From the sequence record MG592671.1: DNA of 64,000 bases; one strand, given 5' to 3'. The notes below the pieces were generated by a model. That model was not told the origin of the DNA and ran no database searches. It saw nothing but the letters and a program-made list of their open reading frames with translations. Positions 45,724-61,319 of this stretch are shown here, one piece after another; position 1 is the stretch's first letter, and each line of letters begins with the position of its first letter. Made by a program: the position numbers and the translations under genes.

Positions 45724-45930
45724 ATGGCTAAATCCTATGTACAGATCAAGTACCTTACAGTAAGCGAACTTGATAAACTAAATGACAAGCGTTTAGTGGA
45801 AGTGCTAAAAGTTGCTCGTAAACACTTCAAGATTCTTGAAGCTGGTGAATTTACTGTTGACGAAGTTGCGTCAGCTGAAACATACCACAACCAAGTCAAA
45901 GCTATTAGCGAGACTCGTAGTAACGTATAG
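45724..45930 (+). CDS. hypothetical protein
   Basis: SD AAGGAG. Confidence 0.7.
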   Translation: MAKSYVQIKYLTVSELDKLNDKRLVEVLKVARKHFKILEAGEFTVDEVASAETYHNQVKAISETRSNV

Positions 45931-45942
45931 TAATCTACGTAC

Positions 45943-46031
45943 AGGGAATGTTCTTGTCAGCGGTCTCCAAAACCGTCGAGAATAAACAGACTTGTGGTGC
46001 TCTAGGGGTTCGATTCCTCCATTCCCTGCCA
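45943..46031 (+). tRNA. Atypical tRNA-Trp(CCA) lacking a normal D-arm
   Basis: Acceptor AGGGAAT/ATTCCCT-G-CCA, loop CTCCAAA, T-loop TTCGATT; only ~10 nt where the D-arm should be. Confidence 0.65.
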
Positions 46032-46047
46032 AATTTTATAAGATATT

Positions 46048-46269
46048 ATGAAAAGTTATAAAAGTAATTGCTTATTTGAAGCAATAAAACTACGATTTAA
46101 AATACCTAACAGTTCATTTAAAATGAAGTGGACAGAACAAAGTTGGATATTCCCTCATTGTTATGTTGAGACCGAAACGCATAAGATTGCTTTTGTTGGA
46201 TTATATTCCGATGAACCACCTTTAGCCCATTTTTGGTACATAGGTAGAATAAAAAGTAGATTGAAATAA
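46048..46269 (+). CDS. hypothetical protein
   Basis: ORF between tRNAs. Confidence 0.6.
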   Translation: MKSYKSNCLFEAIKLRFKIPNSSFKMKWTEQSWIFPHCYVETETHKIAFVGLYSDEPPLAHFWYIGRIKSRLK

Positions 46270-47223: not shown

Positions 47224-47342
47224 GGGCTCATGGCGAAGCGGGATCGCGATTTAGTTTAGTACCTAGATCTAGGAGTACGCATCCGCAACACTCTTAACCG
47301 GCATGATCGGTGACGTTGGTTCGAATCCAACTGAGTCCACTA
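47224..47342 (+). ncRNA. tRNA-like RNA with G3.U70/A73 and a replaced anticodon arm
   Basis: GGGCTCA/TGAGTCC-A-CTA, D-arm and T-arm present. Confidence 0.65.
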
Positions 47343-61236: not shown

Positions 61237-61319
61237 GCTGGTATCGCATAGTGGCAATTGCAATACACTTGTAATGTATCGGGAAACCTTCGTCAGTTCG
61301 AGTCTGACTACCAGCACCA
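61237..61319 (+). tRNA. tRNA-Thr(UGU) with an enlarged variable arm
   Basis: Loop CTTGTAA; 12-nt V region CGGGAAACCTTC; CCA. Confidence 0.88.

Follow-up and report, generated by a model that had tools for sequence, protein, structure and literature searches.

Transfer RNAs (tRNAs) outside mitochondria are, to our knowledge, regarded as invariably cloverleaf and L-shaped. A 2024 paper describes all known bacterial tRNAs as canonical, and reviews of non-canonical tRNAs make no mention of phage or pseudoknotted forms. Described systems close to the gene considered here include tRNA-Sec and the (8/4) tRNAs and allo-tRNAs (Mukai et al., 2017; PMC5389517), among which are tRNA-Ser and tRNA-His found in phages; all are nested cloverleafs with an ordinary D hairpin on the 5' side of the anticodon arm. 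No Trp, Tyr, Arg, D-hairpin-less or pseudoknotted (8/4) forms are described in PMC5389517. The D-armless mitochondrial tRNAs (mitochondrial tRNA-Ser(AGY) and those of nematode mitochondria) lack a D hairpin between acceptor and anticodon and keep the anticodon branch long by extra stacking; they are shortened, with a short replacement loop, often degenerate T loops and no rebuilt D helix. The locus described here is an 89-nt stretch of Vibrio phage 2.275.O._10N.286.54.E11 (hereafter 2.275.O; MG592671.1), a 348,911-bp myovirus whose host is Vibrio cyclitrophicus. It lies on the + strand at 45943-46031 of the analyzed window, a 64,000-nt piece covering record positions 124001-188000, where GenBank annotates nothing. 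Sequence comparison indicates that it probably encodes a tRNA-Trp on a non-canonical scaffold conserved among phages. The shape has apparently not been described before: our search of the literature, with subscription journals mostly outside its scope, turned up no account of this topology.

The phage has no close relatives among GenBank phages or in IMG/VR, so that synteny could not be compared and relatives were sought by pattern. Megablast of the locus matched only MG592671.1 itself, an exact 21-mer from it occurs nowhere in IMG/VR, and IMG/VR holds no close loci for the neighboring small open reading frames (ORFs) or for a 236-amino-acid nucleotidyltransferase-like ORF; the best tblastn relative is Salicola phage SCTP-2, at 44% identity. 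Distant blastn matches were T-arm matches to ordinary tRNAs only, including the canonical tRNA-Trp of Aeromonas phage Aswh_1. The first pattern (a Trp anticodon arm, then an over-long spacer, then a T loop) recovered contig L083 (524 kb) among the IMG/VR matches listed, and the same kind of Trp pattern recovered L150 (identical to L172) and L153 from metagenomes; all three have the odd layout of the candidate, within tRNA clusters of phage type. The covariance model R1, made from these three and the candidate, found the same layout with other anticodons, namely GUA with A73 (Tyr; L083:1027-1114) and UCU (Arg; L070:1820-1904). A pattern that disregards the anticodon (GTGGT, a gap of 8-9 nt and the T loop) added at least about 35 further distinct IMG/VR members, nearly all Tyr, and through a blast search with one of these, copies that lack annotation came to light in two cultivated Pseudomonas phages, SCYZ1 and Lyrsu03. 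The first-pass annotation of this DNA, made from its letters alone, had proposed an alignment of homologues as a check; that alignment bears out conservation of the layout, in at least about 40 distinct sequences from phage and metagenome contigs (33 with anticodon GUA, five with CCA and two with UCU). L233 and the tRNA-Tyr of Klebsiella phage FBKp27 were set aside as canonical tRNAs, and descriptor matches in L159, L111, L166 and L095 were judged false positives.

Family members are 85-92 nt long and share one order of elements. An 8-bp acceptor stem is followed by a UU or UC linker, the 6-nt 5' strand of a D-like stem, the anticodon arm, the 5' strand of a variable-arm-like stem and an A/U-rich loop; then come the 6-nt 3' strand of the D-like stem, UGG(U), the 3' strand of the variable-arm-like stem, a linker of 1-3 nt, a 4-bp T arm, the 3' acceptor strand, and the discriminator with CCA. 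In the first four sequences, the nested helices (8-bp acceptor, 5-bp anticodon, 4-bp post-anticodon and 4-bp T) are 97.6% paired, with double changes at 13 of 21 pairs. Across the family, nt 11-16 pair with a 6-mer in the loop of the post-anticodon stem, directly 5' of the near-invariant UGG; this helix is a pseudoknot, since its partners cross that stem. Other registers for pairing the connector with the variable loop, tried early and by eye, were superseded by this one when more sequences became available.

The fold was also examined in a structure-blind manner, in a MAFFT alignment of 32 relatives made with the candidate excluded and no structural model. The pseudoknot helix (11-16/50-55 in alignment numbering) is 99.0% paired there and shows double changes at five of its six pairs; one of these pairs occurs as CG (11), UA (8), GU (7), GC (5) and AU (1), and the next as AU (13), CG (8), UA (6), GC (4) and UG (1). 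The whole structure is 96.1% paired, vs. 32-57% when partners are slid. A model-fitted alignment of 38-39 sequences gives 98.3% pairing for the pseudoknot helix and 99.4% for the acceptor, and a partner-permutation test on six members, in which 33 of 36 cells pair, gave a mean of 23.2, with just two of 720 permutations reaching 33. Compensatory changes in the relatives extend to all eight acceptor pairs, including pair 8-81 (GC 25, UG 6, UA 5, CG 2, AU 1); to three solid pairs of the post-anticodon, variable-arm-like stem, with pair 37-63 occurring as CG 25, UA 6, AU 4 and GC 3; and to the outer T-stem pair 66-80, which alternates between GC and AU (all in alignment numbering). The anticodon stem covaries as well, and since this includes position 17-35 (AU, GU, UA, CG), it is effectively 6 bp long. 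Covariation in the relatives thus shows a secondary structure with an 8/4 acceptor/T branch, no D hairpin (nt 11-16 lead directly into the anticodon stem) and an H-type pseudoknot in which the anticodon arm is nested. No intron excision or circular permutation restores the canonical order of elements, and readings of that kind were rejected.

The candidate carries this layout throughout, reading AGGGAATG-TT-CTTGTC-A-GCGGT-CTCCAAA-ACCGT-C-GAGA-ATAAACA-GACTTG-TGGT-GCTC-TA-GGGG-TTCGATT-CCTC-CATTCCCT-G-CCA. Its elements, all on the + strand, are as follows.

45943..45950 (+): acceptor stem, 5' strand, nt 1-8 (AGGGAATG); pairs with 46020-46027, the first pair being of A1-U72 type
45951..45952 (+): linker U9 U10; position 9 is T in more than 90% of relatives
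45953..45958 (+): D-like stem, 5' strand, nt 11-16 (CTTGTC); pairs with 45989-45994 across the anticodon arm, as a pseudoknot
45959..45977 (+): anticodon arm; A17.C35 at the closing position, stem GCGGT/ACCGT at 45960-64/45972-76
45965..45971 (+): anticodon loop CTCCAAA, with anticodon CCA at 45967-45969, read from the sequence
45978..45981 (+): variable-arm-like stem, 5' strand, nt 36-39 (GAGA); G36-C60, A37-U59 and G38-C58 pair, A39.G57 unpaired
45982..45988 (+): A-rich loop segment, nt 40-46 (ATAAACA); relatives have 3-12 A/T-rich nt at the same spot
45989..45994 (+): D-like stem, 3' strand, nt 47-52 (GACTTG); always directly 5' of UGG in relatives, and placed here by the independent model R3
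45995..45998 (+): UGGU motif, nt 53-56; TGG varies hardly at all among 32 relatives
45999..46002 (+): variable-arm-like stem, 3' strand, nt 57-60 (GCTC), placed by alignment with relatives
46003..46004 (+): UA linker leading to the T stem, 1-3 nt long in relatives
46005..46019 (+): T arm, 4-bp stem GGGG/CCTC and loop TTCGATT; the inner two G-C pairs are invariant in relatives
46020..46031 (+): acceptor stem, 3' strand (CATTCCCT), discriminator G at 46028 and encoded CCA at 46029-46031, read from the sequence

Membership in the family is supported by R3, a covariance model built from 32 relatives with the candidate left out, whose match begins and ends exactly at 45943 and 46031 and scores 70.4 bits (E about 3e-18 in a scan of 138 kb of phage, E-values from covariance models built here being rough); its next best match in 2.275.O is an ordinary tRNA-Tyr at 26.4 bits. 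The family signatures are present at family spacing: the 8/4 branch, the 9-nt connector with U9, C11-G, the A-rich loop, the 6-mer with UGGU, an enclosing stem of 3-4 bp, and the T loop. Several observations of the first-pass annotation hold on this closer inspection. The Trp anticodon arm and the G73-CCA end are intact, a G-rich TTGTGGT element precedes the T arm, and the acceptor and the anticodon stem are just 9 nt apart, with no D hairpin (a 3-4-bp stem with a GG loop) in that space. The 8/4 drawing of the acceptor/T branch was likewise sound: G8-C78 pairs, the equivalent pair covaries in the relatives, and 8/4 is the only possible drawing because 7/5 needs an A.C pair. The acceptor is Watson-Crick at all eight positions, and the anticodon loop, T loop and G-CCA end are canonical tRNA modules (U33, purine 37, TTCRA).

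The annotation had also called the gene unlike a standard cloverleaf, and the standard tools respond accordingly. ARAGORN makes no call at 45943-46031, and the Rfam tRNA model RF00005 (gathering score 29 bits) gives no match in 45850-46120, either at its gathering score or at E<=10. The sole weak Rfam match, of 37.4 bits, is to tRNA-Sec (RF01852), whose gathering score is 47; that alignment skips the model's D-arm block, and the candidate's anticodon is CCA rather than UCA. Folding the single sequence is uninformative, with a minimum free energy z of -0.8 and a broken T arm. ARAGORN detects none of 40 family members, and those in GenBank phage records (2.275.O, SCYZ1 and Lyrsu03) are unannotated there.

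Set beside described tRNAs, the family combines familiar parts in an unfamiliar order. With canonical bacterial and phage tRNA-Trp (RF00005), the candidate shares the loop CUCCAAA, G73, A1-U72, an encoded CCA, the T loop TTCGATT, a 12-bp branch and a position in a phage tRNA cluster; it differs in lacking the D hairpin, in having a 6-bp D-like stem whose 3' strand and GG follow the anticodon arm, in its 8/4 rather than 7/5 split, and in its variable-arm-like stem. The (8/4) tRNAs and tRNA-Sec resemble the family in the 8-bp acceptor, shortened T stem, long extra arm and occurrence in phages, and tRNA-Sec also in its 6-bp D-type stem and approximately 6-bp anticodon stem; unlike them, the candidate does not keep the D hairpin or the nested cloverleaf. 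In contrast to the D-armless mitochondrial tRNAs, the family is viral or bacterial, has 85-92 nt (89 in the candidate), a canonical T loop and a GG motif, and rebuilds a D-like helix as a pseudoknot. Most members resemble bacterial type-II tRNA-Tyr, with GUA, A73, G1-C72, a start of the form acceptor-UU-CCC, a D-like stem of the form CCC.../...GGG and an extra stem between the anticodon and T arms. They depart from it in running from the D 5' strand through the anticodon arm to the D 3' strand, in the 8/4 split, and in drawing the D 3' strand from the loop of the extra stem.

The candidate is most likely a working tRNA-Trp, to judge from several features of the family. The discriminator tracks the anticodon, being A73 in 33 of 33 GUA members and G73 in five of five CCA members, and the first pair is mostly A1-U72 in Trp members and G1-C72 in Tyr members. 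This agreement is what the identity rules of aminoacyl-tRNA synthetases require, and is therefore a sign of real tRNA function. Members further have canonical anticodon loops for Trp, Tyr or Arg and an encoded CCA, and all lie in or beside phage tRNA genes, in clusters of up to 44 tRNAs; a canonical tRNA of the same anticodon occurs at the same locus in only one of 40 cases. None of the 19 annotated tRNAs of 2.275.O (12 in the window and seven at 189.8-194.1 kb) is a tRNA-Trp, and ARAGORN and the family models found no further tRNA-Trp in the 138 kb scanned. Those 19 tRNAs, with 489 coding sequences and one CRISPR-like feature, make up the 509 features reported for the genome (PMC6029569).

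In the mechanism that we propose, RNase P and 3' trimming would free the tRNA-Trp from a polycistronic transcript. Stacking of the 6-bp D-like helix on the anticodon stem (5-6 bp) would produce a branch of roughly normal length, with about 12 layers. We infer that the UGGU motif is the counterpart of D-loop G18-G19, and its UGG would dock on the canonical T loop to form the elbow. Host tryptophanyl-tRNA synthetase would charge the molecule through G73, A1-U72 and the CCA anticodon, and EF-Tu would carry it by its 12-bp branch to read UGG; that 12 bp is the acceptor/T length measured by EF-Tu and RNase P is an established rule (PMC5389517). As the sole tRNA-Trp of the annotated genome, it may then serve Trp decoding at late stages of infection, or withstand nucleases that target tRNAs. 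Supply of tRNAs upon loss of host tRNAs is the model of Yang et al. (2021) for 2.275.O, in the outline given by PMC12482277; a second hypothesis would have the odd fold evade tRNA-targeting nucleases.

Several observations weigh against a functional tRNA-Trp with the family fold. The candidate is the most deviant member of the family. Its D-like helix has four of six pairs (C11-G52, G14-C49, U15-A48 and C16-G47) around a tandem U.U mismatch (U12.U51, U13.U50), the weakest in a family in which almost all other members have six of six, and its variable-arm-like stem has three pairs and an A.G, the fourth pair being lost. ViennaRNA energies for the candidate favor the nested fold drawn in the first-pass annotation: it comes to -22.4 kcal/mol, whereas the nested part of the family fold comes to -19.0. 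The RNA-library data are long assembler contigs, which confirm the candidate sequence and are uninformative on RNA ends. The search patterns fixed the T loop GGTTCGATTCC together with either GTGGT or the Trp anticodon loop, which biases the census, and the absence of members from 185,579 bacterial genomes refers to the Trp-type pattern, the only one applied to bacteria. On the other side, the D-like helix and a variable-stem pair have changed on both strands relative to L150 (CU to UC at 15-16 with AG to GA opposite, and C-G to G-C in the variable-arm-like stem), and these compensatory changes suggest that the family fold has been under selection in the candidate's lineage.

An unlikely but serious alternative is that the gene is a functional tRNA-Trp folding as the first-pass annotation drew it, in a nested, pseudoknot-free derivative of the family fold. 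There, nt 9-14 (TTCTTG) pair with nt 35-40 (CGAGAA) and lengthen the anticodon helix, leaving a 3-nt bulge, and a separate hairpin (46-49 with 57-61) presents the UGG loop; the annotation described this as a D arm moved to the 3' side of the anticodon arm. That description is essentially right, holding for the 3' strand and the GG motif but not for the 5' strand, which keeps its usual place at nt 11-16. The proposed complementarity is real, extending over six of six positions with one G.U pair, and three candidate-unique positions (U10, G38/A39 and A40) all strengthen it, just as the family helices are weakened in the candidate and the computed energies are lower for the nested fold. As a conserved helix, however, it finds no support: across 39 relatives the corresponding columns pair in 32% of cells, the value obtained by shuffling, and the pairing is therefore not the family's structure. 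The candidate, moreover, retains the compensatory changes that uphold the family's D-like and variable-arm-like stems, and nearest-neighbor energies are blind to pseudoknots, tertiary contacts and modifications. The nested fold is possible as a thermodynamically plausible alternative conformer of the same molecule, reached by a swap of partners among the same four segments.

It is improbable that the candidate is a decaying member of the family, a formerly functional odd-fold tRNA-Trp with eroded core helices that has gone out of use. Such erosion would account for the lost fourth pair of the variable-arm-like stem and for the two cells that the candidate adds to the few left unpaired among 39 sequences in the D-like helix. 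Several further species of tRNA (His, Asp, Lys and Ala) are missing from the phage as well, and on this reading completeness of its tRNA set is therefore not under selection. Tandem U.U mismatches are tolerated within helices, however, and the parts expected of a working molecule are intact: the fully paired acceptor, the anticodon and T arms, G73-CCA, C11-G52, the UGG and the A-rich loop, at a locus within a transcribed cluster of tRNA genes and ORFs.

Another reading, which we consider quite improbable, makes the gene a tRNA mimic acting outside translation, as a decoy or inhibitor of a host tRNA-targeting nuclease or defense, or as a regulator, with a core that exists to be bound. Passages in PMC11555353 and PMC11464382 describe phage tRNAs as countering tRNA-cleaving defenses. 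Some small phages, Lyrsu03 for example, carry a family tRNA with just one or two other tRNAs, and one contig has both a canonical and an odd tRNA-Tyr. In the other 39 of 40 loci, however, the odd tRNA replaces rather than accompanies a canonical tRNA of the same anticodon. Charging and EF-Tu binding are also indicated by the way the discriminator matches the anticodon, by the CCA written into the gene, by anticodon and T loops of canonical form and by the 12-bp branch. A tRNA-like sequence arisen by chance, or a tRNA remnant that is fragmentary or rearranged, such as an attachment-site scar, would explain the silence of standard tRNA finders and is scarcely credible, being already refuted by the structure-blind covariation, which is extensive in every family helix, and by the 70.4 bits scored against an independent family model, at a gene with full-length, precisely bounded tRNA ends.

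The setting of the candidate is that of a phage tRNA gene. It occupies a 117-nt gap between small + strand ORFs (45724-45930 and 46048-46269), inside a + strand tRNA gene cluster with Ser-TGA and Phe upstream and Ser-GCT, Ser-GGA and a 116-nt "tRNA-OTHER" downstream. No promoter-like or terminator-like sites bracket 45943-46031, so the candidate would share a transcript with its neighbors. Four RNA libraries contain contigs identical to the locus (100%), which makes an assembly artifact unlikely. Outside the window, the phage also encodes a tRNA nucleotidyltransferase (CCA-adding enzyme; record 202374-203501) and a protein with a peptidyl-tRNA hydrolase domain (record 215901-216338), and thus carries tRNA-maintenance functions besides tRNAs.

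Other genes of the tRNA complement are also irregular. The 116-nt gene at 47224-47339 (+), annotated in GenBank as "tRNA-OTHER, anticodon TTA", scores 37.8 bits with the Rfam tRNA model and is not called by ARAGORN; it has 62 nt in place of the 17-nt anticodon arm, and may be a tRNA with an intron or some other aberration, possibly one that reads ochre codons. An RNA-library contig (run X5) starts at window position 47334, right after the Illumina small-RNA 5' adapter and ACCCC, which may reflect ligation of an RNA whose 5' end lay close to the 3' end of this gene. The tRNA-Thr(TGT) at 61237-61319 (+) measures 83 nt as called by ARAGORN and 80 nt as annotated in GenBank, above the standard class-I tRNA length. 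ARAGORN calls a tRNA-Val(AAC) that GenBank lacks, and GenBank lists a tRNA-Ser "ACT" that ARAGORN does not call (L184:1306-1378 and L184:6037-6113, or record 189306-189378 and 194037-194113), so that the inventory of 2.275.O varies with the tool.

The searches also turned up further tRNA-like sequences in phages and metagenomes. SCYZ1 (MH518298.3, L294:133-221) and Lyrsu03 (PP179314.1, L295:134-221) are 47-kb Pseudomonas phages that carry an odd-fold tRNA-Tyr near the genome end, in Lyrsu03 adjoining an annotated tRNA-Pro. The 524-kb phage contig L083 has a canonical long-arm tRNA-Tyr (763-846) and its odd-fold tRNA-Tyr (1027-1114) 180 nt apart, the sole co-occurrence among 40 members. At L119:3236-3326 (+), an aberrant tRNA-like sequence with a 7/5 acceptor/T branch has a stem, ACGAC/GTCGT, that appears to surround an anticodon-like hairpin. 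Genes with a CCA anticodon and a long variable arm occur at L018:3764-3841 (-), L003:8656-8732 (+), L016:6884-6958 (-) and many other phage and metagenome loci; parsed by eye, those in L003 and L018 have a D arm like that of Ser, Leu and Tyr tRNAs and discriminator G73. These genes have the look of type-II tRNA-Trp, an unusual kind in its own right. Finally, L124, L128, L132, L141, L142 and related small IMG/VR contigs contain a ribosome-binding site and ATG followed, within about 45 nt, by an element resembling the 3' half of a tRNA (GGGGTTCGATTCCTCTTGCCAGTC).

We see an even chance that the broader picture holds, in which the candidate is the sole tRNA-Trp of a cultivated jumbo phage and belongs to a widespread, unannotated class of phage tRNAs (Tyr, Trp and Arg) that have a pseudoknotted core and are genuine adaptors on bacterial ribosomes. 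The phage serves as an experimental model for phage tRNA function. Such a class would raise the question of why Trp, Tyr and Arg tRNAs in particular take this fold, which may serve escape from tRNA-targeting nucleases, and designers of orthogonal tRNAs would gain a new scaffold from nature. Counts of phage tRNAs by tRNAscan-SE and ARAGORN would then be systematically too low, and phage tRNA inventories and codon-usage analyses would miss a class of genes. More broadly, the family would represent a natural non-cloverleaf tRNA fold outside mitochondria, whose pseudoknotted core, joined to normal acceptor, anticodon and T-loop modules, would show how far RNase P, the aminoacyl-tRNA synthetases, EF-Tu and the ribosome tolerate change in the core of a tRNA.

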